Of a DNA stretch of 64,000 nucleotides, positions 1 to 18,705 are shown piece by piece (position 1 is the stretch's first letter; the number at the start of each line of letters is the position of its first letter). Location of the stretch: the sequence record PP886230.1; one strand, written 5' to 3'. The notes beneath the pieces are model-generated. The model searched no databases and had not been told where the DNA came from. It was given only the letters and a program-made list of their open reading frames with translations. Made by a program: the position numbers and the translations under genes.

Positions 1-5
1 AGTAG

Positions 6-1074: not shown

Positions 1075-1115
1075 TAACTATGCACCCGATGGGCTTGAGT
1101 CTTTCTCGACTTGAT
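1075..1115 (-). ncRNA. CCC-ANN-GGGTG element
   Basis: motif 1083-1093 on minus strand behind TTGCTT-16-TATAAT (1149-1122). Confidence 0.4.
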
Positions 1116-1214
1116 GGAACTATTATACAGTACTGAAAAAATAAAGCAATACCCTGGAAGCAAAAAAGTTTTAATTAATTTGCTTGCTATCCTGGGCCGG
1201 ACTATGGTACTATA

Positions 1215-1270
1215 TTTCAGTACTGAGAAAGTGCGTTTACCTGCTAGGGTGCGGGAGTCTATCCTTTTTT
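1215..1270 (+). ncRNA. CCC-ANN-GGGTG element, degenerate copy
   Basis: CCTGCTAGGGTGCGGGAGTCTATCC; tail matches the 3180 copy. Confidence 0.25.
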
Positions 1271-1284
1271 TATATCTTGAATTT

Positions 1285-1330
1285 TGGACGGATCTTCCCA
1301 CCCCCTGGGGTATCCGCTTTCTCGCGTCTA
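1285..1330 (-). ncRNA. CCC-ANN-GGGTG element
   Basis: motif 1299-1309 on minus strand behind TTGACT-16-TATAAT (1365-1338). Confidence 0.4.
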
Positions 1331-1517
1331 TGTAGTAATTATACGCTTTTTCAGGATCAAGTCAATACCTAAAAACAAAATAATTGAAAATAATTTAACG
1401 CGTTTAAACGGCCCGTAACGCCCTGGATTGTTGGGAGTGGTGCAAATGTATAGCTTAGGTGTATTAATGCGTTAGAATGCGTCTGAGGCCGTTTTATGGG
1501 GTGTAGTAGTGATTTGG

Positions 1518-1610
1518 TTGATTCAGTACTGAATAATAGTACTCCTATATAGAAAGATAGTTCCCCTGGATTGATTCAGTACTGAATAATAGTACTCCTA
1601 TATAGAAAGA
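1518..1610. repeat. 40-bp direct repeat (2 copies, 53-bp period), two AGTACT sites per copy
   Basis: TTGATTCAGTACTGAATAATAGTACTCCTATATAGAAAGA at 1518-1557 and 1571-1610. Confidence 0.9.
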
Positions 1611-1724
1611 AAACTATTTTAAAAGTATTTGTAGAAAGTACTTGCACCGTACTGATAAAAGCGTATAATGTTTTACATCGAGAGCGGGAACACTTCCCGC
1701 TACACTTTAAGAGAGATTAATACG

Positions 1725-2087
1725 ATGGCAACTCAAATCACCAAAATTATTGCTAACCTGGTTAACTTCCGCGACGAGATGAAAGATCTTCCGGCGGCGA
1801 CGGTTAAAACTCACATTGACGCATACCGCGAACTGATTAAAATGCTGCCGCTTAAGCGTGAACAATACGCCGCTACCGTGATGCTTGATGCGATGATCCA
1901 TAAGATGATCGCCAGTGATTTGACGATGGTTTATCAGTATATGGGCGAAAATTTCGCGGTGTGTAGTAAGCCAGTACCAGGGATGGCAACAACTGAGGAA
2001 TTGCACGGCTTAAACTTAAAACAAGATGCATGGGATAATATGCCTCGTTTCCTGGTATGGGCTGACAGTGGCAAAATTTACAAATAA
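1725..2087 (+). CDS. hypothetical early protein
   Basis: promoter, hairpin and RBS; start moved from the promoter ATG at 1668. Confidence 0.8.
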   Translation: MATQITKIIANLVNFRDEMKDLPAATVKTHIDAYRELIKMLPLKREQYAATVMLDAMIHKMIASDLTMVYQYMGENFAVCSKPVPGMATTEELHGLNLKQDAWDNMPRFLVWADSGKIYK

Positions 2088-2182
2088 GTTTAATAAAGTA
2101 CTTGCAAACTATGTTTAATGGCGTATAATGTTTTACATCAGGTGGGGAATAGTTCCCCACTATATAAGAGGATTAAAAAAAA

Positions 2183-2422
2183 ATGGCTAAATCAAAAATG
2201 TTCTTAGGTCACAAAAACAAAACTCATTGGAATGTAAGCCTGTGGATTAATAACGATGAGGGATTGTATCGGTTGGCCCTGGACTTTATTGCCGCCAATA
2301 CTAATCGCAATGATGCGGCCCGTCATATGATGTTATTTTTAGAACAGACTGGACAAGATAAAACACCGGACGGATTCAAATATAGCACTACTGCGATCCG
2401 TGCGGCGATGGTTGGAATGTAA
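2183..2422 (+). CDS. phage hypothetical protein (WNVSLWINNDEGLY motif)
   Basis: own promoter and RBS. Confidence 0.8.
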   Translation: MAKSKMFLGHKNKTHWNVSLWINNDEGLYRLALDFIAANTNRNDAARHMMLFLEQTGQDKTPDGFKYSTTAIRAAMVGM

Positions 2423-2510
2423 TAGAATAGAATTTATTTAAAGTACTATTGCACGGGGATAGTACTTTATAATAGTGTTTTATTCATACACCAACGATAA
2501 GGGCAACAGC

Positions 2511-2777
2511 ATGAATATTAAGTATTTTGCGACGCGTGAACAAGCTCGGATCGCCGCTCGCCAGGACGGGGCAACGTTTAAAGATATGGGCGTACAATCG
2601 GAACGTGGTAAACGTTGGGCCATTGTAAAGCGTAGTACCGCCAGATCATTACAGTACTGGTTAGCGGCCTTAAAAAGTCCCGATAGTGTATCGCGTCGAG
2701 TGGTAGAAATAAAGCTCGACCGAAAGGGCAACCGCGTGACCGTGTACCGTACTAAAAAGATTGCAGTACTTGAATAA
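2511..2777 (+). CDS. hypothetical protein, paralog of 14728
   Basis: shared ATRE..AR, TFKDMG, DRKGNRVTVY. Confidence 0.8.
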   Translation: MNIKYFATREQARIAARQDGATFKDMGVQSERGKRWAIVKRSTARSLQYWLAALKSPDSVSRRVVEIKLDRKGNRVTVYRTKKIAVLE

Positions 2778-2864
2778 AAAGTACTTGCAAACTATGTTTA
2801 AAGGCGTATAATGTTTTACATCGAGAGCGGGAACTCTTCCCGCCTATAACCTGGAGTAATAAAA

Positions 2865-3095
2865 ATGACTAATATGTATATGACTGAAGTTAAAACCGTA
2901 AAAGATACTACCACGAATAAAACTACTTACTTACAGCGGATCTGTGGTGTATGGCAACGTATCAGCAAATCAAAGTACTTTAAATTAACATCATATGCAA
3001 ACCGTTCTGATTCATTCAGTACTGAAATAAAAGGTAATAAAGTACACCAATACGGCACTTATTATTATTACAGCCTGGACGCGATTGCAGTATAA
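2865..3095 (+). CDS. hypothetical early protein
   Basis: promoter cassette, GGAG RBS. Confidence 0.8.
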   Translation: MTNMYMTEVKTVKDTTTNKTTYLQRICGVWQRISKSKYFKLTSYANRSDSFSTEIKGNKVHQYGTYYYYSLDAIAV

Positions 3096-3159
3096 GCAGT
3101 TTACAAATCTTTACAATTGCCGGTATTGACTTATTTTGTCAGTACTGGCATAATGTATT

Positions 3160-3205
3160 CATTGGCAGATAAGCCGTAGCCCATAGGGTGCGGGAGTGTA
3201 TCTAT
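3160..3205 (+). ncRNA. CCC-ANN-GGGTG element
   Basis: motif 3180-3190 behind TTGACT-17-CATAAT (3126-3154). Confidence 0.45.
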
Positions 3206-3224
3206 AGAAAAATTAGTTTAGTAT

Positions 3225-3265
3225 AGTTACAATTGTGCACCCGGTGGGTTAGCTGTTGTCATGGG
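3225..3265 (-). ncRNA. CCC-ANN-GGGTG element
   Basis: motif 3238-3248 on minus strand behind TTGACA-17-CATAAT (3298-3270). Confidence 0.45.
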
Positions 3266-3379
3266 GTATATTATGCCAGTACTTGATAATGCTGTCAATA
3301 CTTTTTTTTACTATCCAGTACAGAAAACTATTTTTAAAAAGTACTTGCAAACTATGTTTAAAGGCGTATAATGTTTTAC

Positions 3380-3455
3380 ATCAGGACGGGGGAACGAAAT
3401 AAGTAACTTCCCGTTAAGTAGCCCAGGAGTAAGGCACACGAAAAACTCCCCTGAT
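3380..3455 (+). ncRNA. ~75-nt closed structured RNA candidate, copy 1
   Basis: own promoter; ATCAGG/CCTGAT closing stem; immediately followed by the next promoter. Confidence 0.5.
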
Positions 3456-3523
3456 AAAATAGTTTGACAAATGTTTTTAAAAGCGTATAATACTTACATC
3501 AACTACTGAATGAGGGTTACAAA

Positions 3524-4135
3524 ATGAAAACTATCACTACTACTACTTTCGTTATGGATTTTTCTGAATTGAACGCAGAACAAAAAACGTCAGCTATCGA
3601 ACTGGTTCGGGAACGTGAAAAAAACTCAAACGACAATTATTTTTCTGAAAGTGAAATTGAATACTATAAAGAAACAGTACTACCGGAATATGGCATTAAT
3701 GACGCTGAAATACAATTCAGTGGCTTTTGGTCCCAGGGTGACGGTGCATCAATCAGTACTGACCACGTTGACGCAGTGAAGTTTTTACGCAAGGTAAGAG
3801 CATTAACTAAGTATCGCTCAATCCGTCACTTGCTGAATGAAGATGATTTGGCGATGAGTGTAAAGCGTTCGCACTCCCACTACTCGCATGAGAATACTGT
3901 AAGCGGGTACATTGAATCGGCTTACACTGATTTAACCGCAAAACAAGAAACGTTAGTTAATGAGCTTGAGGAACTACTCACTGATACTATTCGTGAATTG
4001 TCCCGCAAGTTGTACCGTGATTTAGAGAATGCATATGAGGATCAATTCACTACTGAAAACATTACGGCACTGATTGAGGGTAACGAGTATCAATTCAATG
4101 TTATTGATGGCGTAGTGGAATCAATCGAATATTAA
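3524..4135 (+). CDS. phage/mobile-element hypothetical protein (FSGFWSQGDGA motif)
   Basis: motif recalled from MGE proteins often loosely annotated as antitoxin; function unknown. Confidence 0.75.
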   Translation: MKTITTTTFVMDFSELNAEQKTSAIELVREREKNSNDNYFSESEIEYYKETVLPEYGINDAEIQFSGFWSQGDGASISTDHVDAVKFLRKVRALTKYRSIRHLLNEDDLAMSVKRSHSHYSHENTVSGYIESAYTDLTAKQETLVNELEELLTDTIRELSRKLYRDLENAYEDQFTTENITALIEGNEYQFNVIDGVVESIEY

Positions 4136-4227
4136 TTTAAAAAGTACTTGCAAACTAAGTTTAAAAGCGTATAATACTTTATATCGAGAGCGGGAATAGT
4201 TCCCGCTACTAATGAGGAATACTACAA

Positions 4228-4392
4228 ATGAATACTTTTACCTTCGCTCAATTGAACGCCCTGGATGTATTGTCTGATGCTTTGCGGGATGCAACTGAAA
4301 GCGGTTTATTTGACAATGTTGACATTCACCCTGATGTAATTAATAATTTTTGTGATGCTATCGCAGAAGTACTGGAAGATCTAAAAAAATAA
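4228..4392 (+). CDS. small hypothetical protein (54 aa)
   Basis: promoter cassette and GAGG RBS; below ORF-track cutoff. Confidence 0.7.
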   Translation: MNTFTFAQLNALDVLSDALRDATESGLFDNVDIHPDVINNFCDAIAEVLEDLKK

Positions 4393-4480
4393 TAGAAAGT
4401 ACTTGCAATTAGTTTTTAGTACTGTATAATGTTTTACATAGAGGGGAGAAATGGTTCTCCCTGGTAATGAGGAAAATACA

Positions 4481-4702
4481 ATGGCTAATATCACTACTCT
4501 TTCCCAACTGGAAGCACTGGTTAAATCTATGCGGGAACATGCCGACAATATCGGCGTAAAAGATCCAGCCGTTTGCTTCTGCGACGAATTGAATGATGAT
4601 ACCCTGGTAATAGCAGAAGTCCAGGACGTTTCTAACTATTCCTCGCGTTACACTGGCGGCGTAGCAAATAAAGGTGACTTCTGTTTATACCTTACCAAAT
4701 AA
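4481..4702 (+). CDS. hypothetical early protein
   Basis: promoter cassette, RBS, terminator-like hairpin after. Confidence 0.8.
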   Translation: MANITTLSQLEALVKSMREHADNIGVKDPAVCFCDELNDDTLVIAEVQDVSNYSSRYTGGVANKGDFCLYLTK

Positions 4703-4754
4703 CAACGCGGGGAGATAATAACTCCCCGTTACTTTTTCAGTACTGAATCATTTA

Positions 4755-4803
4755 ATAGACGGATCTCGGCACCCGGTGGGTTAGTGACTGTTTCGTCTTG
4801 ATG
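4755..4803 (-). ncRNA. CCC-ANN-GGGTG element
   Basis: motif 4770-4780 on minus strand behind TTGACA-17-CATAAT (4837-4809). Confidence 0.45.
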
Positions 4804-4945
4804 TAGTAATTATGCCAGTACTGGATGCACTTGTCAACAACTATTTTTCAAATACTTTTTATTAAAATACTTGCTAATAGTTTTTAAACGCGTATAATGT
4901 TTTGCATAGGGGGAGCGGTTCCCCTGGTAACTAAGGAATAATAAA

Positions 4946-5182
4946 ATGCTTGAACAAATCAAATCAACGTCTGCGAATGTAACGGGAACGGTTGTACACT
5001 TTACTAGTGATGAATCGCGGGGCGTTCCCTATTGTGCTGTACATGTAAACACTGATGGCAACTACTGGTTTACGGTTTACGGATCATATTCATTTGGACG
5101 ACCAGGGCATCAAAAAATTCTGGATAAAGTACAGCCAACGGGTAAAAATATCACGGCTGAAATGTTTTATAAAAAATCATAA
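4946..5182 (+). CDS. hypothetical early protein
   Basis: promoter cassette and RBS. Confidence 0.8.
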   Translation: MLEQIKSTSANVTGTVVHFTSDESRGVPYCAVHVNTDGNYWFTVYGSYSFGRPGHQKILDKVQPTGKNITAEMFYKKS

Positions 5183-5267
5183 AGTACTTGATAATAGTTT
5201 TTAGTACTGTATAATATTTTACATCGCAAGGGGGTAATGGTTCCCCCTGGTAACTAAGGATAATCAA

Positions 5268-5567
5268 ATGAAAGTTGCATTCATCGCCCTGGCTTTATCT
5301 GTTTCCTCTTTTGCTGTTAATGCGTCGTTAGATGTAAGTAGTGAAAAATTCATTCAGTGCACTGTAGCAATGACAGATGAAAGTACTGGCGAGATTGTAT
5401 TAAAGGATCTGGAGATTCAGCCGGAAGCATTTAAAAACGGCCCGTTCCATGAAGAAGACGAAAACGGTAGCACAACAATTTATTATGATGCCAGTACTAA
5501 ACGCGGGTCGGTCACTGTTATGGATACTGAGAAAGTAACTCATACTGGCGTTATTAATTGCCGTTGA
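5268..5567 (+). CDS. exported protein with Sec-type signal peptide
   Basis: MKVAFIALALSVSSFAVNA (K, hydrophobic core, AxA). Confidence 0.7.
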   Translation: MKVAFIALALSVSSFAVNASLDVSSEKFIQCTVAMTDESTGEIVLKDLEIQPEAFKNGPFHEEDENGSTTIYYDASTKRGSVTVMDTEKVTHTGVINCR

Positions 5568-5588
5568 TAGATACTACGGGGTAACATC

Positions 5589-5819
5589 ATGACTAAGCGA
5601 ATTGTTTTACTTAACGAAAGCAGTACTACACAACTACTTAACGCCGTGCATTATGATATTGAAACGAGCGTTAATCTTATCAGTACTGTAGTACTGTTGG
5701 ACACTGGAAAGGTCGCCAATGATAAAGCGATTGCAGGTATACTAACGGATCTTGAGCCTGGTAGCAGTGCACCAATAACGTTAAATGGTAAAGTGTTTAA
5801 TATTTTACTCACTGATTAA
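5589..5819 (+). CDS. hypothetical protein
   Basis: RBS; followed by terminator. Confidence 0.75.
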   Translation: MTKRIVLLNESSTTQLLNAVHYDIETSVNLISTVVLLDTGKVANDKAIAGILTDLEPGSSAPITLNGKVFNILLTD

Positions 5820-5825
5820 GTACAT

Positions 5826-5847
5826 AGCCCACCTGGTGGGCTTTTTT
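5826..5847 (+). terminator. intrinsic terminator
   Basis: AGCCCAC-CTG-GTGGGCT-TTTTT. Confidence 0.85.
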
Positions 5848-5936
5848 GTTTTTGTAGTATCGTAGTACTGAGATACTTTGAAAATAGTTTTAAAAAAGTA
5901 GTTGACATTACCGCAGAAAAGCGTAGAATGTATTAC

Positions 5937-6009
5937 ATCAAGACGGGGAGCACTAAGTAGACCGCCAGTAAGTCGAACGAAAAACTGGACACGTCGAGAA
6001 AACTTTGAT
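5937..6009 (+). ncRNA. diverged third copy of the structured RNA, or leader of the H-NS-like gene
   Basis: ATCAA/TTGAT closing stem; shares ACGGGG, TAAGTAG, CGAAAA. Confidence 0.3.
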
Positions 6010-6050
6010 ACACTAATAAACGTAAACTAAACTTTAATTGAGGATTTATA

Positions 6051-6533
6051 ATGGCTAATGTAAAATCATTCATCAAAGCACTGGTAGCAAATGAAACTAA
6101 CGTCGCGGCTGAGATCCTGGCTGAACTGGATAACGATACCATGAAAGCGGTACGCAATAATTTTAACATCGCGTACAGTACTGCGAAAGAACTACAAGCA
6201 AATAAAGCGGCAGAAATTGAAGCGGCAAAGGCGGCCCGTGAAGCAGAACTACAAGCAACAATCGAAAGTATCCAGGCGGCGGTGTCTGGATTGGATCTGG
6301 AAGTGGTTGTGGAAATGGCACATAAAGCCCTGGCGGTTAAGTATGGTGAAGATAAGCCAGAATCTAAACCCAAAAAATGGATTCAGGAACGCGTAGCGGT
6401 AGTACTGGACAACGGGGAAGAATATCTGATTCCGGTGCGTGGTAACTGTATTGCGGTAGTACTGGACGCTATCAAAGAAAGCGGTATGACTCGCGAGGAA
6501 TGGATCGAAGCTCATCGCAAAGTTGAAGCATAA
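6051..6533 (+). CDS. H-NS/StpA-like protein with altered DNA-binding motif
   Basis: Ala/Glu coiled coil, basic linker, C-terminal VLDNGEEYLIPVRGNCIAVVLDAIKESGMTREEW aligns by eye with H-NS [34 protein letters not shown]. Confidence 0.55.
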   Translation: MANVKSFIKALVANETNVAAEILAELDNDTMKAVRNNFNIAYSTAKELQANKAAEIEAAKAAREAELQATIESIQAAVSGLDLEVVVEMAHKALAVKYGEDKPESKPKKWIQERVAVVLDNGEEYLIPVRGNCIAVVLDAIKESGMTREEWIEAHRKVEA

Positions 6534-6554
6534 CAATTAAAGTACTGAATCACT

Positions 6555-6580
6555 AGCCCACTGTATAAGTGGGCTTTTTT
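6555..6580 (+). terminator. intrinsic terminator
   Basis: AGCCCAC-TGTATAA-GTGGGCT-TTTTT. Confidence 0.85.
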
Positions 6581-6817
6581 GTGTTTATCGTTTACCAGGC
6601 CACCAGCACCGCCTAGAAACGATTCTAACGCATTAAACGGATTATCTGATGCATTGCCCTAGCTGGTGGCGTTAAGGCTGTAAGAACGCGATTGAGAGCG
6701 TTTAAAGTATTTTGCAAAAAGTAATAAAAAGTACTTGAACGATTAAGAGATTAGCGTATAATGTTTTACATCGAGAGGGGGAAACGGTTCTCCTTCCAAA
6801 TCAAAGGAATCAAAACA

Positions 6818-7045
6818 ATGGCTATTATCATTACTCGCGTATCTGGTACTACTGGCAACGAACAAGTAGTTGCAGTCATTACGAACAAGGCAGGTGCGGA
6901 ATTGCAAAATGCAATGAATACCTGGGCCGTTAATGAGTTCGGTCAGTGGGCAAGTGTAGCATACATTGAAACCTATCAAGTGCCGTCGATTAGTTTAACT
7001 GATTTGGGCGTTGAGCGTATCCTTTGCCTTGATGAATTAAATTAA
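6818..7045 (+). CDS. hypothetical early protein
   Basis: promoter cassette; start moved from 6761. Confidence 0.8.
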   Translation: MAIIITRVSGTTGNEQVVAVITNKAGAELQNAMNTWAVNEFGQWASVAYIETYQVPSISLTDLGVERILCLDELN

Positions 7046-7130
7046 AAAAGTACTTGCAAAGTAAATCGAATAAAGTATAATACATTACATCAAGGGGAGA
7101 AATGGTTCTCCCCACTACAAGGAAACTAAA

Positions 7131-7343
7131 ATGGCTATCATTACTAAAATCAAAGTTAGTAAATCACTGGTTAAACTTGAAGAAGTGAAAGAAGGTTATA
7201 AAGTATCTTGGTGCGGTATGTATCGGACGTTCGCAGATATAGATGATGCGATCAATTATTACACTGACACGGTTAAAAACTTTGTTCGTGCTGATGTGGT
7301 TATGGCAGTGGCAACATATAAAGCATCAAAAGAAAGTAAGTAA
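7131..7343 (+). CDS. hypothetical protein, weakly similar to 10287 and 11198
   Basis: Y.VS.G....T.....A..YY pattern. Confidence 0.75.
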   Translation: MAIITKIKVSKSLVKLEEVKEGYKVSWCGMYRTFADIDDAINYYTDTVKNFVRADVVMAVATYKASKESK

Positions 7344-7424
7344 AAATATTATCACAGTACTATTGACATAGTTTGATAGTACTGGCATAATAACTTTTAT
7401 CAAGACAACTAAGAGGAAATTAAA

Positions 7425-7769
7425 ATGGCTAACATCAATACTATAGCAGCACAAAATATCAACCTGTCTTCTGTTGAAGTTGTACATATTGCCGCTCGGC
7501 GTTGGTTCCAGGCTTCATATGGTAACACTTATTTCTCTTTAAGTGTAGACGTAGAAATTGATGGTAATTTTATTGAAGTAGTAAACGTGCCGTTCCAATA
7601 TGGATACGGGGATCATTTTGACACTGTAGCAATGGAAGAATTTAGCAAGGTTATTAATATGGAAGGTAAAGAGTTTTTACGCGGTTCTTATCTTTCCCGT
7701 TTTTGCCGTGATAATAATATCACTGTTTATAGTTCTGTTAGTGATGTTAAACGCAAAAAAGATCTTTAA
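7425..7769 (+). CDS. hypothetical protein, paralog of 14309
   Basis: shared RW...GNTY.S, F.YGYG, DVKRKKD. Confidence 0.8.
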   Translation: MANINTIAAQNINLSSVEVVHIAARRWFQASYGNTYFSLSVDVEIDGNFIEVVNVPFQYGYGDHFDTVAMEEFSKVINMEGKEFLRGSYLSRFCRDNNITVYSSVSDVKRKKDL

Positions 7770-7849
7770 TTAGCTTTACTTTATGCAGATACTTTGATAT
7801 AGTGTCTGCATAGGGGAAAGAAATTAAATTAACTTAAGAGGATAGTATA

Positions 7850-8119
7850 ATGAAAAATATCAGTACTTTAATCGATGCAGGTACTCATGTTCGTCGGTCT
7901 ATGGTTGCAACCAGTACTACAAAACAAGTAGCGAGCGGTTATCTTGTATTTGTGCACGATGGTAAACTCCTGGAACGTTCAATCAATTTTGATGTTAAAA
8001 ACAATTGCCGTTTTATTATCTTTAAGCGTGAGCAATATAAAATTGATTTACCAGCAAAGCCCATTAGTGGGGCGTACAACGTGCAATCATTGTTTGAACG
8101 TCAACCATACACCTATTAA
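7850..8119 (+). CDS. hypothetical protein
   Basis: GAGG RBS. Confidence 0.75.
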   Translation: MKNISTLIDAGTHVRRSMVATSTTKQVASGYLVFVHDGKLLERSINFDVKNNCRFIIFKREQYKIDLPAKPISGAYNVQSLFERQPYTY

Positions 8120-8170
8120 TCAAAACATCGTTAGCGGTCGATTCAGGCCGCTTATATTGGGGATTATACC

Positions 8171-8443
8171 ATGAACGTTAATCAAGTACTGAATGAGATC
8201 GAAAGCATCATTAAACCGATGAAGCGTACTGATGCTATGTTAACACCGGAAGAATGCCGCCTTTATGAGCGTTACAGCGTCGAACAAGTCCAGGCAATGG
8301 CTATGGCTACCCCAGCCGTTAAACCGCCTGAGAATGCGTTACAGGACGTTACAGGGGATTATATCATCAATCCAGTACTAGGGAAGATGGCTGCAATCAC
8401 CGAAGATCAACAAGACTACTTAAGCCAGTACTTAAAAGGTTAA
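8171..8443 (+). CDS. hypothetical protein
   Basis: RBS, in series. Confidence 0.7.
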   Translation: MNVNQVLNEIESIIKPMKRTDAMLTPEECRLYERYSVEQVQAMAMATPAVKPPENALQDVTGDYIINPVLGKMAAITEDQQDYLSQYLKG

Positions 8444-8448
8444 TTAAT

Positions 8449-11197: not shown

Positions 11198-11344
11198 GTG
11201 CAAGTGTATAAAAATTTTCATGGTGTATCGTTCCGCACATATGGGGATGAATATGTGGTATCATGTGGATTGGAAAAAGTAAGAACAAGTAATATTATTG
11301 TCGCATTACAGTACTATAGTATTTTTATAATGAGGTTAAAATAA
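11198..11344 (+). CDS. small hypothetical protein (GTG start, or 1-nt frameshift from ATG 11188)
   Basis: TAATG-coupled to the TraR-like gene; YVVSCG pattern as in 7131/10287. Confidence 0.45.
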   Translation: MQVYKNFHGVSFRTYGDEYVVSCGLEKVRTSNIIVALQYYSIFIMRLK

Positions 11345-11601
11345 TGGCTGTAGGATTCGCGAAAGATGGGGCCGAGCAAGACGAGATTAACGCAGTGATT
11401 CAGGCCGCCGTTAACCACGCTAGAAAGCAAATTAACGCACAAATAGAATCACTGATACATTGCCTCGACTGCGGCGATATAATCCCTGAGAAACGACGCC
11501 AGGCCGTTAAGGGATGTAAGTACTGCATAACTTGCCAGGAGGATCATGATAGTACTTTTAAACGTCCCCCGCGTAATTGTTGGCATAGATCTATGAGATA
11601 A
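11344..11601 (+). CDS. DksA/TraR-family C4 zinc-finger protein (YbiI/TraR-like)
   Basis: GFAKDGAEQDEI N-terminus; CLDCGDIIPEKRRQAVKGCKYCITCQ. Confidence 0.9.
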   Translation: MAVGFAKDGAEQDEINAVIQAAVNHARKQINAQIESLIHCLDCGDIIPEKRRQAVKGCKYCITCQEDHDSTFKRPPRNCWHRSMR

Positions 11602-11664
11602 AAAGTATTGACAGTACTGAAAGATAGTGTATAATGTTTTATATCTTAACTGAGGATAGTAATC

Positions 11665-12021
11665 ATGGGAATACAACATATCACGCGTACTACTGACAAT
11701 GGCGAGATCACTGGCTATCAAGTACAGGGCAAAGTAGCACAATTGCAGTACTGGTTTGTGAAACGTGGAATCATTGCACCGGATCTTGATTATGACCGTG
11801 TAGCGTTTATTGATTCTCTTTATGTTGATCCTGATAGTCGGGGCAATGGTGAAGGTAACGAATTAATGAATGCCTTTATTGATGCCGCCGATGATTCAGA
11901 TTGTATCATTTTAGAATGCGATACGGGAGAAGATAACGCCTTTAATCTTAAAGAATGGTACGAAGGTTTCGGATTCGAGGTACTGATCGATAGTGAATAT
12001 CCTATCATGATTTTATCATAG
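11665..12021 (+). CDS. GNAT-family acetyltransferase
   Basis: IDSLYVDPDSRGNGEG (motif A), LKEWYEGFGF (motif B); own promoter. Confidence 0.85.
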   Translation: MGIQHITRTTDNGEITGYQVQGKVAQLQYWFVKRGIIAPDLDYDRVAFIDSLYVDPDSRGNGEGNELMNAFIDAADDSDCIILECDTGEDNAFNLKEWYEGFGFEVLIDSEYPIMILS

Positions 12022-12099
12022 TACTTGCATTTAGTTTTCAGTACTGTTATAGTACTTGCATCAAGGGGAAACATCTTCCCCTACTAAGAGGAAATAAAA

Positions 12100-12288
12100 A
12101 TGGAAAACTTATCAAGTATTTTAGTACAAGATGATTTCGGTAATCCTGGAAGTGCTATCATTGTTCGGGGTAATAAAGCAACGTTTGTTATTGCTGGTGG
12201 ACCAGTACAGCGTAGCATTAAAAATAATGCTGTTACCATTAATAATGTACGCTATCGCTTAGATAAAGAATTGATTCATAAACTGTAA
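12100..12288 (+). CDS. hypothetical early protein
   Basis: promoter cassette. Confidence 0.75.
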   Translation: MENLSSILVQDDFGNPGSAIIVRGNKATFVIAGGPVQRSIKNNAVTINNVRYRLDKELIHKL

Positions 12289-12315
12289 TATTAATTTAAT
12301 AGAGGATAACAATAA

Positions 12316-12639
12316 ATGTACATTCATACTACTATCACAAAGGAAGTCCGTTGCCAGTTCGAAAGTATTCCGGGCGTATGTTTCATCACTGGTACGTTTT
12401 CCCCTGGTGATCGTGATAATCCAGTACTGTTACAATTACGCCATCCATCATGGGATAAAGCATTTGATCTACCGTTGAATGAATTCGCAACTACTGCTGA
12501 AAAGTACATTAAAAATATTCGCGAGAATGATCGACTATTCATTAATGCTTTTAGTGATTCCGCGTTAAGCGAGATCCACGGCGTATTGGTTGCAATCATG
12601 GAATCAATGCAGAAAACTAAATTCAAACAAGGTGAATAA
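12316..12639 (+). CDS. hypothetical protein
   Basis: GAGG RBS. Confidence 0.75.
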   Translation: MYIHTTITKEVRCQFESIPGVCFITGTFSPGDRDNPVLLQLRHPSWDKAFDLPLNEFATTAEKYIKNIRENDRLFINAFSDSALSEIHGVLVAIMESMQKTKFKQGE

Positions 12640-12722
12640 AAACTATTGACAATGCAACCCAGTACTGTATAATAGTTTACATGAAGGGGAGAAATGATTC
12701 TCCCCACTGAGAGGAAAGAAAA

Positions 12723-12935
12723 ATGCAAGGTCAACTAATCGTTCGTAAATGGTCTGATACTAACGAAAAACCGTGGGATGTACAATACATCGGACCGGAT
12801 GGGGTATCACGTTATCAGCCTGGCGTAACGCATAGTACTGAGCAATATGCCGCCGCTCACCGCGAACGCCTGTTAGAATCCATGAAACAGGGATTCTGTG
12901 AAAAATTCATTCAAGATCATTGGCTGAAAGATTAA
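12723..12935 (+). CDS. hypothetical early protein
   Basis: promoter cassette. Confidence 0.8.
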   Translation: MQGQLIVRKWSDTNEKPWDVQYIGPDGVSRYQPGVTHSTEQYAAAHRERLLESMKQGFCEKFIQDHWLKD

Positions 12936-12952
12936 TAGAAGGAGTACAGCTT

Positions 12953-13045
12953 ATGCAAATGAATCCGATGATTATTGTTTTAGCTGTACTTATGATCATT
13001 CATGCAATTGTAGAAGTATTAACGCAATCAGGAGTAATAAAATGA
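12953..13045 (+). CDS. 30-aa membrane peptide
   Basis: AAGGAG RBS; MIIVLAVLMIIHAIV. Confidence 0.55.
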   Translation: MQMNPMIIVLAVLMIIHAIVEVLTQSGVIK

Positions 13046-13215
13046 TTCAAGTAGAATTATCAGTACTGAAAGATCTGTTTTATCGGTTAGGTACTACTGG
13101 AGAGTATCCTAAAAGTGATACCGCAAAACTTTTTGTATCACTCGACTTATGGCAACGCGAACAATTAGTAATGTCCTGGCGTAAAGGTAAAGCAGATCGC
13201 GAGGTGAAAGCATGA
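13042..13215 (+). CDS. small hypothetical protein
   Basis: GGAG RBS, ATGA-coupled. Confidence 0.6.
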   Translation: MIQVELSVLKDLFYRLGTTGEYPKSDTAKLFVSLDLWQREQLVMSWRKGKADREVKA

Positions 13216-13361
13216 AAGAATTCTTATTCGAAGTAGTGTTTCAAGGTGTCGGTAGTAACCAACTGATTCGCTCAAGTGGTTACAATGTTAACCAGGCATG
13301 GAATAACATTAAACAAATGTACCCGAACGCTATCACCTATCGCAACCCGAAAGAAGTTTAA
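13212..13361 (+). CDS. small hypothetical protein
   Basis: GAGGTG RBS, ATGA-coupled. Confidence 0.6.
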   Translation: MKEFLFEVVFQGVGSNQLIRSSGYNVNQAWNNIKQMYPNAITYRNPKEV

Positions 13362-13411
13362 AAATATTTGAAAAAGGGATTGACTCCGGTCAGTCCCTTT
13401 GCTATTATATA

Positions 13412-13455
13412 CGCATAGAAACAATTCAGCCCACCGGGTGCATAAATGTATCTAT
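13412..13455 (+). ncRNA. CCC-ANN-GGGTG element
   Basis: motif 13430-13440; -35 inside GGGATTGAC-TCCG-GTCAGTCCC hairpin. Confidence 0.45.
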
Positions 13456-13533
13456 TATATGCTGGTGGCTAGTACTGAAAACTATTTTTAAAAAGTACTT
13501 GCATTGTATTTAGAATCAAGTATAATGTTTTAC

Positions 13534-13606
13534 ATCAGGACGGGGAACGAAACAAGTAACCCCGTTAAGTAGTCCAGGAGTAAGACATACGAAAACCTCC
13601 CCTGAT
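13534..13606 (+). ncRNA. ~75-nt closed structured RNA candidate, copy 2
   Basis: near-identical to 3380-3455 with a compensatory GCC/GGC to GTC/GAC change. Confidence 0.5.
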
Positions 13607-13674
13607 AAAATAGTTTGACAATAGAAATTAAACGAGTATAATACTTACATCAACCACTGATAAGGAAACATAAA

Positions 13675-13950
13675 ATGCGGATTCTACTGACAGCTAACGA
13701 AATCGAACAAGTACTGACTACTAACCTGGAAGACTGGAAACGTGAAGCAGATATCCAGGCGGTTCAATGGTTAAATGATAAGTTAACGCCGGATGACTTA
13801 AGCAAGATTGTAGATCCTCAATTCTACGAAGATATCCACGACACCGCGTTAAGCGTCGAGGATGTACTAGATAAGCACTTTATTGATACTGATTTGCAGG
13901 TTTACGGTCGTAAAAACTTTATCACTATTCACGACATTTACAATAATTAA
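13675..13950 (+). CDS. acidic hypothetical protein
   Basis: promoter and RBS. Confidence 0.8.
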   Translation: MRILLTANEIEQVLTTNLEDWKREADIQAVQWLNDKLTPDDLSKIVDPQFYEDIHDTALSVEDVLDKHFIDTDLQVYGRKNFITIHDIYNN

Positions 13951-14037
13951 GTATTGACAAAGTATCTTAGTACTGTATAATAGTTTACATCAAGCGAGGG
14001 GAATGGTTCCCCTCCTAACTAAAAGAGAGAAATAAAA

Positions 14038-14220
14038 ATGGCTAAGTGCACTATCTGCAAGAAAGAAATAGTATTAGTTCCAAGTGCCCGTGAACGTGCC
14101 GCTCGGTTCGGTGGCAAAGCGTCAGACTATACAAAAATGTTTACTACCCATACAGCTTGCCAGGTAGCAAAACGTTCACAAGAAAGCGTAGAATTAATGC
14201 GTAAACTTTCCAAAAAATAA
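14038..14220 (+). CDS. small putative Zn-binding protein (CxxC...HxxC)
   Basis: CTIC and HTAC; promoter cassette. Confidence 0.7.
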   Translation: MAKCTICKKEIVLVPSARERAARFGGKASDYTKMFTTHTACQVAKRSQESVELMRKLSKK

Positions 14221-14308
14221 GTATTGACAAAGTATCTTAGTACTGTATAATAGTTTACATCAAGTGAGGGGAAACGGTTCCCCTCCTAACAAAGAGAGAG
14301 AAATAAAA

Positions 14309-14632
14309 ATGGCTATGATCCTTGCCCAGAAAGTAGAATTGAAAATTGTAACCTCCTTTGACATTAACGTTAATCGGTGGACTGATTCACACGGCAATAC
14401 TTACCACTCTTGCTACGTGTCTGCGTTAATTGGCGACCGCTGGGAAGACCTGGGACACGAAACCTTTACATACGGTTACGGTACACAAGGCGAATACACG
14501 GGCTTGGAGATCATTAAAGAAACCGTTATAGGTTTCAACCCGAAAGAAAAAGTTATTCACCGCATCGAGGAAGAGATCAACAAAGAAATAACAGTTCGCT
14601 ACCACGATGTAAAACGTAAGAAAGACATGTAA
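14309..14632 (+). CDS. hypothetical protein, paralog of 7425
   Basis: shared motifs; start moved from 14264. Confidence 0.8.
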   Translation: MAMILAQKVELKIVTSFDINVNRWTDSHGNTYHSCYVSALIGDRWEDLGHETFTYGYGTQGEYTGLEIIKETVIGFNPKEKVIHRIEEEINKEITVRYHDVKRKKDM

Positions 14633-14727
14633 TAGAATCCATTTAAAGTACTATTTGACATTGCCCAGATAGTACTTTATAATAGACTCTAACTTGTAGT
14701 ACTAACTTAACTAATAGGATGTATACC

Positions 14728-15123
14728 ATGATTACTAAATTCTACGCTACCCGTGAAGCTGCCCGTATTGTTGCACGCGAGGAAGGCGAAACATTTAAAG
14801 ACATGGGCAAAGATGCACCGAAAGGTCAACGCTGGGCCGTACAGTTCAAAGAGATCTCTGATATTGTGAATTCACCGGAGCCAGTACTAACAGCAGCAGA
14901 ACTAAAACGAGCGGATTTACTGGCGTCAATACTTGATGCACAAGATGAGTTTATCGCTGATTCTGATATCAAAGTACAGACAAACCACACCGCTTGGACT
15001 CACGCGGATCACCTGGCAAACCTTAAGCGTCCAAGTGAACTGATTCGCAACCAGAAAGAGATCCGACACGACCGTAAGGGTAATCGTGTAACAGTATACA
15101 GTAAACGCCGCCAGGTTATCTAA
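14728..15123 (+). CDS. hypothetical protein, paralog of 2511
   Basis: shared motifs; terminator at 15146-15170. Confidence 0.8.
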   Translation: MITKFYATREAARIVAREEGETFKDMGKDAPKGQRWAVQFKEISDIVNSPEPVLTAAELKRADLLASILDAQDEFIADSDIKVQTNHTAWTHADHLANLKRPSELIRNQKEIRHDRKGNRVTVYSKRRQVI

Positions 15124-15184
15124 TAACTTGCAGTACTAACAACACGGCGGGATCAGTTCCCGCCTTTTTTATAGGACAAACAAA

Positions 15185-15439
15185 ATGATTAAGGTTCAAC
15201 TATATAAAGATAACATCTTACGGGTACACTATAAAGCACCTCAGAGAATCATCACAAAGGCCGTACAGCTTGCTAATGAGTTTATTAATGGTAACCTATT
15301 ACCAAGGAAGTTAAGCAACGGGAAACTGCGTGTAATCGATGTGGACACTAACAACAGAATAGTAATAGAGAACACAGGAAAAATAAACCTATATGAACAC
15401 CAACAATATAATAAGAAAATAAAACTAATATCACGTTGA
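15185..15439 (+). CDS. possible RelE/ParE-fold protein
   Basis: basic 84 aa; RKL..GKLRVIDV...RIV...LYEHQQYNK pattern recalled from ParE-like families. Confidence 0.4.
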   Translation: MIKVQLYKDNILRVHYKAPQRIITKAVQLANEFINGNLLPRKLSNGKLRVIDVDTNNRIVIENTGKINLYEHQQYNKKIKLISR

Positions 15440-15492
15440 CAGTACTCAAATGTTTTAGTACTATATGTACATACCAACACGGGGGAAACAAA

Positions 15493-15735
15493 ATGATTAC
15501 TTTAGAAAAACGTATCAAAGAAACTACATCGCTGGTGGAACTGTTAACAGTACTCAAATGTAAAACAACACCATTCAGCACGCCGGACTTTATTAATATG
15601 GTTGATGTTAATGGTCGCTATCGTATCACGGTCGAACAAGGAGCGGCGAAAGTATTCAGTACTAAAAACACGAAGGAAGTGATCCACGCCGTTAATGTTA
15701 AAAAAGTAGTTGCCATTGATAGTAAAGTACTGTAA
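15493..15735 (+). CDS. hypothetical protein
   Basis: promoter at ~15436; start moved. Confidence 0.75.
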   Translation: MITLEKRIKETTSLVELLTVLKCKTTPFSTPDFINMVDVNGRYRITVEQGAAKVFSTKNTKEVIHAVNVKKVVAIDSKVL

Positions 15736-15766
15736 GATAGTTACATTAACTCAAGGAGAACATGCA

Positions 15767-16351
15767 ATGCGTAATTATACTAAATTCATCCGTACACTGT
15801 CAGAAATGGAAACCAACAAAGAGATCCTTTCAGCTTGTCGGTTAGCTGGCCTGGAGATCATCGGTGCTGGTTCTTCCCGTATAGTATTCGCTTTAAATGA
15901 TCGGTTAGTGATTAAGGTCGCGAATTGTGATGCGGGTGTAGAACAAAATGAAACTGAATGTAAGGTATGGAATTTTTTAGACTATGACCGCCCTCAGTTG
16001 AAACAGTACTTTGCAAAGGTGCATATGCATTTATGCGATCCTGATAATATGTTTATCGTTATGGATCGGTTGAGTACTGCAAGCAAAGGCAGCGTAAAGC
16101 ACGTTAACGCGTGCAACGAATTAAAGTATAATATTAAACGTAATGCCATTGAACGCCAGCACCGCTTTGCTGATGCACTACAACACGTTGATGATACATT
16201 ATCAACACTAACGATAAGAGATATCAGAAAACAGAATATCGGCCAGGATCGTAATGGACTTATTAAAGTACTTGATTACGGTTTAACCCGCAATATCTGG
16301 AATCAGTACTATAAAAAGCGTGATGTAGAAGCAAGTAAGGTAACACGATAA
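15767..16351 (+). CDS. protein kinase-like (Ser/Thr kinase fold) protein
   Basis: IGAGSSRIVF (Gly loop), VIKVA (Lys), EQNETE (helix C), DIRKQNIG (catalytic loop), VLDYG (DFG-like). Confidence 0.8.
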   Translation: MRNYTKFIRTLSEMETNKEILSACRLAGLEIIGAGSSRIVFALNDRLVIKVANCDAGVEQNETECKVWNFLDYDRPQLKQYFAKVHMHLCDPDNMFIVMDRLSTASKGSVKHVNACNELKYNIKRNAIERQHRFADALQHVDDTLSTLTIRDIRKQNIGQDRNGLIKVLDYGLTRNIWNQYYKKRDVEASKVTR

Positions 16352-16403
16352 AAAAAGATTAAAAAAGGGATTGACTCCGGTCAGTCCCTTTGCTATTATA
16401 TAT

Positions 16404-16451
16404 TCATTGAGAGATAACTCACTGACCCATAGGGTGCGGAAGTGTATCTAT
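16404..16451 (+). ncRNA. CCC-ANN-GGGTG element
   Basis: motif 16426-16436; same hairpin-promoter upstream. Confidence 0.45.
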
Positions 16452-16573
16452 TATATAAGTATTCAGTACTGAAAACTATTTTTAAAAAGTACTTGCATTG
16501 TACTTAGAATCAAGTATAATGTTTTATATCGAGAGGGGAAATGGTTCTCCCTCAAAGAACAAGGAATAAAATC

Positions 16574-16795
16574 ATGACTACAATGACTTGCATTCACGCT
16601 TCAAACCTGCTTAATGATGCGGCCTTTAATGTTGAAACAGAATATCAATGTTATCGGGATGAAAATAAAAAAGTTTTTGTAGTTGATAATAATGGTTTCC
16701 ATATTGAATTGCAATCCGGCTTCACTGGCGTTGATGGTAAATCAGTATGGGGCGTACAGGATGATAAAGGCACATATCATTTTAAACGTAATTAA
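16574..16795 (+). CDS. hypothetical early protein
   Basis: promoter cassette; start moved from 16541. Confidence 0.8.
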   Translation: MTTMTCIHASNLLNDAAFNVETEYQCYRDENKKVFVVDNNGFHIELQSGFTGVDGKSVWGVQDDKGTYHFKRN

Positions 16796-16881
16796 GTATT
16801 GACAAAGTATATCAGTACTGTATAATAGTTTACATCAAGGGGAGAATAGTTCTCCCCACACCAATAAAAGGAAACATAATT

Positions 16882-17154
16882 ATGTCTAGCTACTCCGCTA
16901 CTATGATCATTAAAGATATGAACGGTAATCCTACTTCTGCTGGTGGATCATTTGGAAACATTAATTTAGATGGTCGGTTATCCATGCAATCAGCAATCGA
17001 TGCAGCGAAAGAAGTTTTTAAGAATGAATGTACTGTTAGTAAGCTGGATTATATGGGATTTGCTATCGAAAAAACTAATCGTTTTGTGGACTACAAAAAA
17101 CCACTGATGATTGATACTAACCTGAAAGCAAACGAAGTGGAGTACTTATTATGA
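16882..17154 (+). CDS. hypothetical early protein
   Basis: promoter cassette. Confidence 0.8.
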   Translation: MSSYSATMIIKDMNGNPTSAGGSFGNINLDGRLSMQSAIDAAKEVFKNECTVSKLDYMGFAIEKTNRFVDYKKPLMIDTNLKANEVEYLL

Positions 17155-17342
17155 CAGTTGAAGAAGTAAAAAAAGTACTGGCAGTACTACGCTATCATAA
17201 TCATTGTAAGGTGAAGAATGATCCTGATTATCTTGATTCATCCCTGGAAGAGGATACACTACAAGCAATAAGCCATATGCAAAAAATGCTTAAGCGTATG
17301 ACCGAAAAGAACAGGCCAGACTATATCGGAAATAAAATTTAA
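17151..17342 (+). CDS. hypothetical protein
   Basis: ATGA-coupled, GGAG RBS. Confidence 0.75.
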   Translation: MTVEEVKKVLAVLRYHNHCKVKNDPDYLDSSLEEDTLQAISHMQKMLKRMTEKNRPDYIGNKI

Positions 17343-17428
17343 AAAGTACTTGCATTGTAGTTAGATTAACGTATAATGTTTTACATAGAGCGGGGGAATA
17401 GTTCTCCCGCCAGTCCAGGAGATACACC

Positions 17429-17692
17429 ATGAACACTATCGAAATCACTATCAATGCACACGTATACGACAACGTAGTACTGCAAACTACTATGACCGCT
17501 AATGATACCAGTACTTTGCGGAATACTGTTATTAGTGCCGTATGTGCCGCTATCGGTGATGTCGCCCTGGAAAATGCAAAACACGTAAACGATGGTTTCA
17601 CTATGTGCAAACGTGATAACGCAAAACATATCATCGTGGAAGGTTACGGCGGTGTAGAATTTAATGTTTATATGAAAAAAGTACTTGCATAA
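17429..17692 (+). CDS. hypothetical early protein
   Basis: promoter cassette. Confidence 0.8.
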   Translation: MNTIEITINAHVYDNVVLQTTMTANDTSTLRNTVISAVCAAIGDVALENAKHVNDGFTMCKRDNAKHIIVEGYGGVEFNVYMKKVLA

Positions 17693-17759
17693 TAACTAAA
17701 ACAAAGTATAATGTTTTGCATAGGGGGAGATATCCTCCCCCACTAAAAGGAGTACTAAA

Positions 17760-17984
17760 ATGGCTAACTTTGATGAACTGATGCGGGAAGTAGCTAACCT
17801 GGCAGAAGAGAAGAAATCATTCGATTCTATCTATAACACCGCTCATCGTGATTCAGTACTGGCATGTAACCAGGATCAAAAAGATGAACTAATCGCCACC
17901 TATCATGAAGCATGGAAGTACTACCGACAATGGGAGAAAGAAGAAAGCGAGTCTACCATCAACGGCATCAATAATCTAATCTAA
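17760..17984 (+). CDS. hypothetical early protein
   Basis: promoter cassette. Confidence 0.8.
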   Translation: MANFDELMREVANLAEEKKSFDSIYNTAHRDSVLACNQDQKDELIATYHEAWKYYRQWEKEESESTINGINNLI

Positions 17985-18060
17985 AAGTTTTATTTCAGTA
18001 CTATTGACATAGCTTGATAGTACTGATGTAATAACTTTACTAACTACAAGGGGAAACATA

Positions 18061-18318
18061 ATGGAACAGTTCACACAATATCGGGTAAATCCTCAAGCTA
18101 TGGCCTACGTAGAAGACCATAAAACGTTACCAGTACTGCAACCAGTTAAAGGCCATATCTATCGTGCAATGTCGTGGTGTGCGGCCCAGGATGGCTATAA
18201 AACCGTAGCCGTGGGTATGTACTGCGGTAATGGTGAATGGTTTGATCCAAATAATCCGGTAGCCATTGACAGTACTGAAAAAATGAAATGGGCCGACTAC
18301 ATCGAAGATATTTCATAA
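18061..18318 (+). CDS. hypothetical protein
   Basis: promoter and RBS. Confidence 0.8.
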   Translation: MEQFTQYRVNPQAMAYVEDHKTLPVLQPVKGHIYRAMSWCAAQDGYKTVAVGMYCGNGEWFDPNNPVAIDSTEKMKWADYIEDIS

Positions 18319-18408
18319 AAACTATTTGACAGTACTAACCAGTAATGTATAATGTTTTACATAGAGCGGGGGAATAGTTCTCCCGCCAATAGTTTGGAGT
18401 TAAACATT

Positions 18409-18609
18409 ATGTCTATCGCTATCTCCCTGGTTGAAGTACTGAAAGAAGCTAAAGCCAACCAGATCGACGTAAAGATCCAGGAACTACAAAACGGCTTAAT
18501 CGGCTGTACTTGTACCGCTGGTGGAGCGGCAGACTATCGAGAACACGAATCACTCGAATCACTGGTTCGGTATCTTTCCATGATCGTTGATGATTGGAGA
18601 ATCATCTAA
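18409..18609 (+). CDS. hypothetical early protein
   Basis: promoter cassette; start moved from 18352. Confidence 0.75.
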   Translation: MSIAISLVEVLKEAKANQIDVKIQELQNGLIGCTCTAGGAADYREHESLESLVRYLSMIVDDWRII

Positions 18610-18662
18610 CAAAAAAGAATAAAAAAGGGATTGACTCCGGTCAGTCCCTTTGCTATTATATA

Positions 18663-18705
18663 CGCATAGACAAAAACTAGCCCACAGGGTGCATAGGTGT
18701 ATCCA
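18663..18705 (+). ncRNA. CCC-ANN-GGGTG element
   Basis: motif 18681-18691; same hairpin-promoter upstream. Confidence 0.45.

Follow-up and report, generated by a model that had tools for sequence, protein, structure and literature searches.

The stretch analysed here (the window) comprises bases 1-64000 of Escherichia phage vB_EcoM_E9.1 (E9.1; PP886230.1, 367,851 bp), as established by megablast (window positions 1-20000 at 100% identity) and in agreement with the record annotation. E9.1 is a jumbo myovirus of the Rak2/121Q/PBECO4 type (Asteriusvirus-like). Its 20,107-bp direct terminal repeat (DTR) contains every copy of the element considered here, a short module in which a sigma70-like promoter is followed by a sequence predicted to form a two-hairpin RNA domain. 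The long terminal repeats of jumbo phages are thought to carry the genes expressed first, nearly none of which has a known function. In relatives of E9.1, repeats of ~20 kb are backed by PhageTerm in Sharanji and in fENko-Kae01 (PMC11218385), by PhageTerm and restriction digests in fEgEco12 (PMC13070987) and by read depth and pulsed-field gel electrophoresis in CBB (PMC5259590).

An earlier note, made from the letters of the window alone, had described eleven promoter-driven elements free of open reading frames (ORFs) and sharing a CCC-ANN-GGGTG triloop hairpin. It overlooked that the whole set falls within the terminal repeat, as seen from a 0-mismatch repeat comparison. A pattern search with CCCANNGGGTG returned ten matches in the 64-kb window (shuffle mean 0.12, maximum 2), and these agreed exactly in coordinates and strand with ten of the elements described; the degenerate eleventh, at ~1240(+), is real but decayed. 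The loop variants of the second hairpin (ATA, ACC, ACA, ATC, AGG), the semi-conserved tail after the motif and the two convergent pairs were likewise as described. A covariance model (R1), built from 13 copies of like geometry and searched over 389 kb of fetched DNA, recovered exactly the ten copies in the window, with no match in 20108-64000 or in record positions 267852-347744. The features are as follows.

1-20107, no strand: left copy of the DTR, identical (0 mismatches) to record positions 347745-367851
1061-1150, minus: copy 1083(-), with -35 at 1145-1150, -10 at 1122-1127 and two-hairpin RNA domain; model match 1061-1115, 52 bits
1184-1273, plus: decayed copy, convergent with 1299(-), with weak promoter and altered second hairpin; model match 1217-1273, 12.3 bits, E 0.22 with filters off
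1277-1365, minus: copy 1299(-), promoter 1365-1338 and RNA domain; model match 1277-1331, 56.7 bits
3126-3212, plus: copy 3180(+), one half of a convergent pair; promoter 3126-3154; model match 3159-3212
3216-3298, minus: copy 3238(-), the other half of that pair, lacking the first hairpin; promoter 3298-3270; model match 3216-3259, 23.3 bits
4698-4837, minus: 4770(-), a stand-alone predicted small RNA gene, with promoter 4837-4809, RNA domain 4802-4748, AGTACTG and bidirectional intrinsic terminator 4728-4708
9335-9429, plus: copy 9397(+), with a terminator-like hairpin (9335-9362) that includes the -35; second promoter 9475-9502, then an ORF at 9554
11017-11106, plus: copy 11074(+); second promoter 11133-11160; segment 11013-11332 is missing from the relative EC22.5-2
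13373-13462, plus: copy 13430(+), terminator/promoter hairpin 13373-13400; lacks the first hairpin
16364-16458, plus: copy 16426(+), terminator/promoter hairpin 16364-16391; model match 60.7 bits
18624-18713, plus: copy 18681(+), terminator/promoter hairpin 18624-18651; lacks the first hairpin; second promoter 18772-18800

Promoter linkage and covariation

In every window copy a -35 hexamer is present and a -10-like hexamer precedes the CCC, with its end 21-28 nt away, which bears out the sigma70-type promoter previously assigned to each. A C-A step lies 6-8 nt after the -10; its A was taken as the predicted start, placing the beginning of the motif at about +15 to +22. The 25-35 nt that the earlier note gave as the distance from the start fits the distance from the -10 instead. 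Promoter statistics were gathered from 89 distinct promoter-linked copies (Rak2-like loci of seven named phages and three metagenomic viral contigs). The -10 ended 15-29 nt upstream of the motif in 89/89 copies and 20-29 nt upstream in 87/89, and the motif strand was always that of its promoter. The -35 was TTGACA or TTGACT in 77/89 copies, the spacer was 17 bp in 71/89 and TG preceded the -10 in 61/89; the -10 itself was imperfect (TATTAT in 38 copies, CATAAT in 14). Ordinary DTR gene promoters mostly have a 16-bp spacer and a perfect -10, and the module promoters form a distinct subset, to which between a fifth and a quarter of all strong DTR promoters belong. In four window copies (9397(+), 13430(+), 16426(+) and 18681(+)) the -35 lies within a 12-bp terminator-like hairpin. 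These hairpins, to which an insulating function had been ascribed, were confirmed as real but belong to a known kind (PeSL-like).

The R1 search of the 389 kb returned 110 matches (84 distinct), for which the model's E-values are rough. In the alignment of the 84 distinct sequences, 94.9% of cells at paired positions were paired; shuffles reached 73.6%, and sliding the partners gave no more than 53%. Compensatory changes were numerous in each of the four pairs of hairpin 1, one pair occurring as CG (25), AU (16), GC (16) and UA (4) and being unpaired in 2. Hairpin 1 was absent from ~20/84 copies, which keep an A-rich stretch instead. Hairpin 2 was nearly invariant (CCC/GGG), with a closing pair of AU (42) or GU (37) and a third pair of CG (78), UG (3) or UA (2); a CBB copy with CCT...AGG provides an example of compensation. 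This alignment was fitted to the model, which favours pairing, and the covariation counts mix paralogues and orthologues of shared descent. The slid controls nevertheless argue that the covariation is real, as does RNAalifold, which found the identical two helices, and no third, in the model-fitted alignment of all 110 copies (A3). In distant copies the loop of hairpin 2 can be 4 nt and its first base need not be A. The constant feature is therefore the stem with the TGC that follows, rather than an A-N-N triloop.

Sequence invariance of this kind would also suit recognition of double-stranded DNA downstream of the promoters, by a phage or host protein that switches them off or on. Hairpin 2 and the following TGC show little covariation, and other promoter-linked DNA words occupy fixed positions in the DTR, notably AGTACT. 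However, recognition of double-stranded DNA leaves unexplained that hairpin 1 changes in sequence yet keeps its pairing. The rare changes in hairpin 2 are compensatory (UA) or wobble (UG), the loop varies freely and the motif is always on the strand of its promoter, and we consider a DNA-level operator improbable.

Two further features of the sequence were considered and dropped. A third helix or pseudoknot, in which the tail would pair with the 5' end or with the loop of hairpin 1, was visible by eye in some copies, and minimum free energy folds of 9397(+) and 4770(-) use such 5'/loop-to-tail pairs, but RNAalifold retained two helices only. A mini-ORF in the tail was rejected as coding, its frames ranging from 1 to ~21 codons with ATC in place of a start in a quarter of the copies. 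On inspection by eye, ATG, GTG or TTG frequently opens the tail, 5 nt past GGGTG, and a stop triplet frequently sits directly before CCC.

Three genomic contexts

The copies occur in three settings. Stand-alone copies are oriented against the direction of the genes. Their motif is followed at 23-26 nt by AGTACTG and at 41-43 nt by a strong, GC-rich intrinsic terminator, which the plus-strand gene upstream shares. They were found in at least six phages, and include 4770(-) in E9.1, two in fENko-Kae01, one in Muenster, two in RaK2 and several in metagenomic contigs. The predicted RNA of 4770(-) is ~100 nt long and is kept end to end in relatives, fifteen such stand-alone units aligning along this whole length, with terminator stems that covary. 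Judged by these sequence features, the stand-alone units are putatively complete, ORF-free small RNA genes. An own promoter, the lack of an ORF and a terminator within ~100 nt were found together in 4770(-) and its counterparts, and in no other window copy.

In convergent pairs, the spacing from motif to motif is conserved across genera. It is 58 nt in E9.1 (3180/3238), twice in CBB, in GAP32 and in a 354-kb contig, and 69 or 76 nt at other loci. A read-through transcript of the pair 3180/3238 folds into one long hairpin (-42.7 kcal/mol, z -6.35).

Copies in gene direction lack a terminator and are followed, 39-81 nt after the motif, by a second promoter and then an ORF. This variable distance speaks against a spacing-dependent cis role on that next promoter. 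The record annotates 'hypothetical proteins' of 29-99 amino acids over modules or promoters (935-1301, 3256-3402, 9330-9443, 11070-11264, 13399-13491 and 16371-16472). Most of these small coding sequences (CDSs) begin ahead of the predicted start of transcription or are on the other strand; CDS0004 (1002-1301, minus) begins within the 1299(-) transcript. No CDSs of this kind are annotated in the equivalent parts of CBB and fENko-Kae01. The tiny CDSs are probably over-calls. Taken as predicted transcripts, the modules are ORF-free as first proposed. The analysis also corrects annotation, since several tiny 'hypothetical proteins' in deposited records overlap predicted RNA units.

The main rival explanation for these arrangements is a role in cis, as a 5' leader or transcription-unit boundary that resets transcription and whose structured 5' end stabilises the early mRNA or lets a regulator act; on this explanation the minus-strand copies would be insulators that collide with read-through transcription. 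Of the ten window copies, five precede an ORF without an intervening terminator and four overlap a terminator hairpin and so place terminator and promoter on one DNA stretch; every minus-strand copy is oriented towards plus-strand genes. The predicted 5' end lies 3-4 nt before the first hairpin, and stem-loops in such a position are known to protect E. coli mRNAs from 5'-end-dependent decay. However, the stand-alone copies have nothing downstream to regulate, yet are the best-conserved form, and nearly every plus-strand copy is followed by a separate ORF promoter at a variable distance. The 5' hairpin is absent from about a quarter of the copies, EC22.5-2 lacks the whole 11074 module but retains the flanking DksA-like gene, and insulation by collision requires no conserved RNA hairpin. 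Leader and insulator roles, taken jointly, are a possible but doubtful account of the module, at about one chance in four in our estimation.

Promoter-primed R-loop origins of replication, as in T4 ori(uvsY) or ori(34), had also been suggested. The plus-strand copies do combine a promoter with AT-rich DNA downstream, and a G-rich segment of the RNA could hybridise to the template. This AT-rich stretch is, however, the upstream element of the next promoter, the stand-alone copies run into GC-rich terminators that would release the RNA, and the RNA appears to be selected for self-pairing. The pairs are convergent and not divergent, so that the twin-domain model would predict overwound DNA between them. 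Each repeat holds 8-10 copies, and the cumulative GC skew has no turning point in the window. Origins of this type are a poor fit and, among the explanations considered, the most remote.

Distribution and comparison with known systems

A 106-nt query from copy 13430(+) matched 64 phage records, all of them Rak2-like (from Escherichia, Klebsiella, Salmonella, Erwinia, Pectobacterium, Cronobacter and Serratia), and several of the matches fell in stretches annotated as terminal repeats. The DTR regions of CBB, fENko-Kae01, GAP32 and Muenster each hold 5-10 promoter-linked copies in a like layout. With the covariance model, 8-10 copies per DTR were found in Rak2-like phages of Escherichia, Klebsiella, Cronobacter, Pectobacterium and Yersinia (the last a candidate assignment), and at least one in a short Serratia locus. 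An exact-pattern scan of IMG/VR gave loci only from Rak2-like contigs of 345-378 kb, including RaK2, 121Q, Serratia BF and the 354-kb contig, and from one metagenomic contig of 109 kb. At least six enterobacterial genera have phages that maintain the module at 8-10 copies in each repeat. The earlier note had made its proposal depend on conservation in related phages and had suggested a covariance search of phage genomes and Rfam; the module is present across Rak2-like genera, and the search of Rfam 15 was negative, both at gathering score over the 64 kb and, for the modules, in the DTR with E-values as high as 5. One sub-threshold match, to Trp_leader at 6518-6582 (29.9 bits against a gathering score of 41), overlaps an ordinary terminator (6555-6575) and is probably due to chance.

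The genome-wide check for absence outside the DTR covered 164 kb of E9.1 and the complete sequence of the close relative EC22.5-2 (351,992 bp), which matches the E9.1 DTR at 94.5% identity over the third that aligns. R1 finds nine copies in EC22.5-2, all within the 18.8 kb equivalent to the DTR, and the other ~333 kb yield only two matches at E about 0.3. No R1 match was found in the 39-kb DTR of the Pseudomonas phage PA5oct. The pattern had a single match, an ordinary terminator, among 185,579 bacterial and archaeal genomes, and blastn of the 105-nt stand-alone RNA against 5,426 E. coli genomes gave no match at E up to 10 (sensitivity ~20 identical bases). The element is not mentioned in papers on CBB, fEgEco12, fENko-Kae01, phAPEC6 and Sharanji, nor was it met in full-text literature searches. 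The family is an undescribed one, promoter-coupled and confined to the terminal repeats of one jumbo-phage clade.

The closest known arrangement at the DNA level is the PeSL cassette of T4-type phages (Arbiol et al. 2010, PMC2839356; Comeau et al. 2014, PMC4122927). In both, strong early promoters of sigma70-like type, preceded by AT-rich DNA, recur many times within a plastic region full of small orphan genes, and some module copies, like PeSLs, also have a terminator stem-loop next to the promoter. In E9.1 the A-rich runs upstream of such promoters are visible. In PeSLs, however, the stem-loop lies upstream of the promoter and there is no conserved transcribed motif, whereas the module carries a two-hairpin RNA domain downstream of the predicted start; a terminator hairpin occurs in only 4/10 window copies, where it overlaps the -35, and in none of the other six. 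The copies might on this basis be no more than mobile promoter/terminator cassettes, recombination points that shuffle small early genes and lack an RNA function. In keeping with this, four copies are composite terminator/promoter hairpins of the T4 type, the DTR is mosaic between E9.1 and EC22.5-2, and one indel (11013-11332) takes out exactly the 11074 module. However, the breakpoints lie at intergenic promoters generally, with no preference for modules. Recombination homology leaves the compensatory changes in the predicted transcribed hairpin unexplained, as it does an 11-nt core that is unchanged across genera despite a weak match between the DTRs (72-73% identity over ~90 nt, CBB and GAP32). 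The modules would therefore take part in PeSL-like shuffling, which does not appear to explain them, and we regard a purely recombinational role as unlikely, slightly more so than the DNA operator.

Short terminator-ended RNAs of the lambda oop type, compared here in arrangement, resemble the stand-alone form in having their own promoter, no ORF, a length of ~80-100 nt and an intrinsic terminator, and in converging on the 3' end of a protein gene. The module differs from them in being a multicopy family with a shared 5' domain, in overlapping the mRNA only at the shared terminator and in lacking a terminator in most copies. PA5oct, a related Pseudomonas jumbo phage, offers a precedent: by RNA-seq its DTR genes are highly transcribed early, and two abundant non-coding RNAs, ncRNA001 and ncRNA002, are encoded in its long DTR (PMC7318152). 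These RNAs are single-copy and 236 and 451 nt long, and the model found no match in that DTR, making them a precedent and not homologues.

The lambdoid nut site (boxA/boxB) shares with the module a small promoter-proximal RNA hairpin with a purine-rich loop, apparently built for protein binding. The comparison was made on boxB alone, a 15-nt hairpin with a 5-nt loop; hairpin 1 has a 4-bp stem and a 6-7-nt loop and is missing from ~20/84 copies, so identity with nut was rejected. Stand-alone copies, moreover, are followed by no operon on which antitermination could act, and every gene cluster keeps a terminator at its end. RNA anti-CRISPRs (solitary repeat units) and pseudo-ToxI are likewise phage-borne, promoter-driven small RNAs proposed to mimic host RNAs. 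The former were set aside as the module had no match of ~20 nt or more to any of the 5,426 E. coli genomes, and the latter as its copies are dispersed 0.2-4.6 kb apart with no tandem array and no match in Rfam (ToxI-type families included if present in Rfam 15). None of the PeSLs, short terminator-ended RNAs or PA5oct RNAs is known to have the two-hairpin domain, and every sequence test of membership was negative.

A putative early RNA family and its setting

We hold with high confidence that the module is best read as a transcribed, folded RNA, because pairing is kept while the sequence changes, promoter orientation and distance are fixed, and complete terminator-ended units occur. Our favoured reading goes further and takes the module as a new family of early, multicopy, structured non-coding RNAs that act in trans through the invariant hairpin and are probably bound by protein; we give it a probability of about 0.45. 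Host sigma70 RNA polymerase would produce these RNAs in the first minutes of infection from dedicated strong promoters (near-consensus -35, 17-bp spacer, TG-extended imperfect -10). Function would reside in the first ~55 nt of the transcript. There, an optional hairpin of 4 bp, its 6-7-nt loop rich in purines, starts 3-4 nt from the 5' end; after a short linker comes the nearly invariant hairpin, with a CCC/GGG stem, an R-U closing pair and a loop of 3-4 nt, and then GC and the semi-conserved tail. Short products may arise by three routes, namely an intrinsic terminator (stand-alone copies), an opposing promoter (convergent pairs) or read-through or processing (copies upstream of a gene promoter). 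With 8-10 templates per repeat, or ~20 per genome, the RNA would be abundant early, and binding of the invariant hairpin by a phage or host protein could lead to titration or guiding. Action in trans is suggested because the stand-alone units have no downstream target, a high copy number is maintained and the next promoter follows at no fixed distance. Protein binding is suggested because the hairpin, too small to be stable by itself, is invariant in sequence.

Several points weigh against this reading. The isolated ~55-nt domain is not unusually stable (z -0.3 to -2), although modest stability is expected of small protein-binding hairpins. Hairpin 2 is conserved by sequence and not by covariation, which would also fit DNA recognition. 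The long self-complementary RNA predicted from convergent pairs is not needed by a model in which the hairpin is exposed, and most plus-strand copies, having no terminator, may be simple mRNA 5' leaders. The literature searched contained no transcript data for Rak2-like phages, and among the DTR ORFs no RNA-binding domain was found that would point to a partner protein.

The earlier proposal of a multicopy early small RNA gains support from the covariation of hairpin 1, the constant strong promoter and the terminator-ended, ORF-free units found across genera, while its protein-decoy part stays conjectural. One specific form of it is a dosage-driven decoy or guide, in which ~20 early templates flood the cell and the RNA captures a conserved enterobacterial RNA-binding factor (candidates being a ribonuclease, a chaperone or a defence sensor) or recruits a phage factor. 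We advance this tentatively, rating it well below the broader reading. No likeness to a host RNA, CRISPR repeat or ToxI-type RNA was found by blastn of the E. coli genomes or in Rfam. A search for base-pairing targets of the stand-alone RNA in the phage genome was uninformative, the excess of 10-12-nt complements stemming from the palindromic AGTACT, which is common genome-wide. If the RNA acts as a decoy or guide, the terminal repeat would be an RNA-based as well as a protein-based device for host takeover, and titration of a host factor would represent a novel takeover mechanism in a virulent phage. The predicted 5' ends, which lie for example near 4802(-), 9377(+), 13411(+) and 16404(+), the covariance model and the three context classes make the question testable by RNA-end mapping.

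At the left end of the repeat, a further minus-strand promoter without the motif lies at 1024-996, after copy 1083(-). The earlier note had called the minus-strand copies the only clear minus-strand units, which is roughly right, as all ORFs of at least 130 amino acids in 20-64 kb are on the plus strand, but leaves out this promoter. Downstream of it lie an array with 8/16/40-nt periods (810-901, ~11 short units) and, within 722-760, two further minus-strand copies (at 722 and 748) of the 12-nt tail word of modules 1083(-) and 1299(-), without hairpins.

Past the right edge of the DTR the G+C content drops from ~0.39 to 0.30-0.35. The repeat contains ~45 strong sigma70-like promoter sites, 12 of them perfect consensus, and nearly each small ORF has its own promoter. 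Recognisable domains among the DTR proteins were a DksA/TraR-type zinc finger (11344-11601), a GNAT acetyltransferase (11665-12021) and a weak, sub-threshold protein-kinase match (15767-16351). The remaining DTR proteins tested matched only PHROGs without an informative function label, with the exception of a weak match of ORF 9554-9895 to a 'DNA ligase' PHROG. No tRNA or tmRNA was found in a search for them. Further right, at about 28400-54300, lies a long series of back-to-back plus-strand ORFs of ~140-200 amino acids that looks like a large paralogous gene family; a similar run stands just right of the fENko-Kae01 DTR.

The palindrome AGTACT is hugely over-represented, with 250 occurrences in the window (133 in the DTR against 6.5 expected, 117 in the rest against 14.7) and 919 in the whole EC22.5-2 genome against 119 expected. 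Within DTR promoters it takes fixed places, abutting the -35 in 17/40 and lying in the spacer just before the -10 in 14/40, a pattern that suggests either a site for a DNA-binding factor or a separate promoter class. The 20-kb repeat has 11 copies of an octamer taken to be the E. coli Chi site, nine on the plus strand (590, 6662, 10731, 12193, 13461, 15531, 16939, 18517 and 18739) and two on the minus strand (578 and 6600), and the next 44 kb have only one. In EC22.5-2, 9 of its 16 plus-strand copies lie within the DTR region. Such Chi-like octamers at the genome ends could possibly serve in protection from RecBCD or in the stimulation of recombination.

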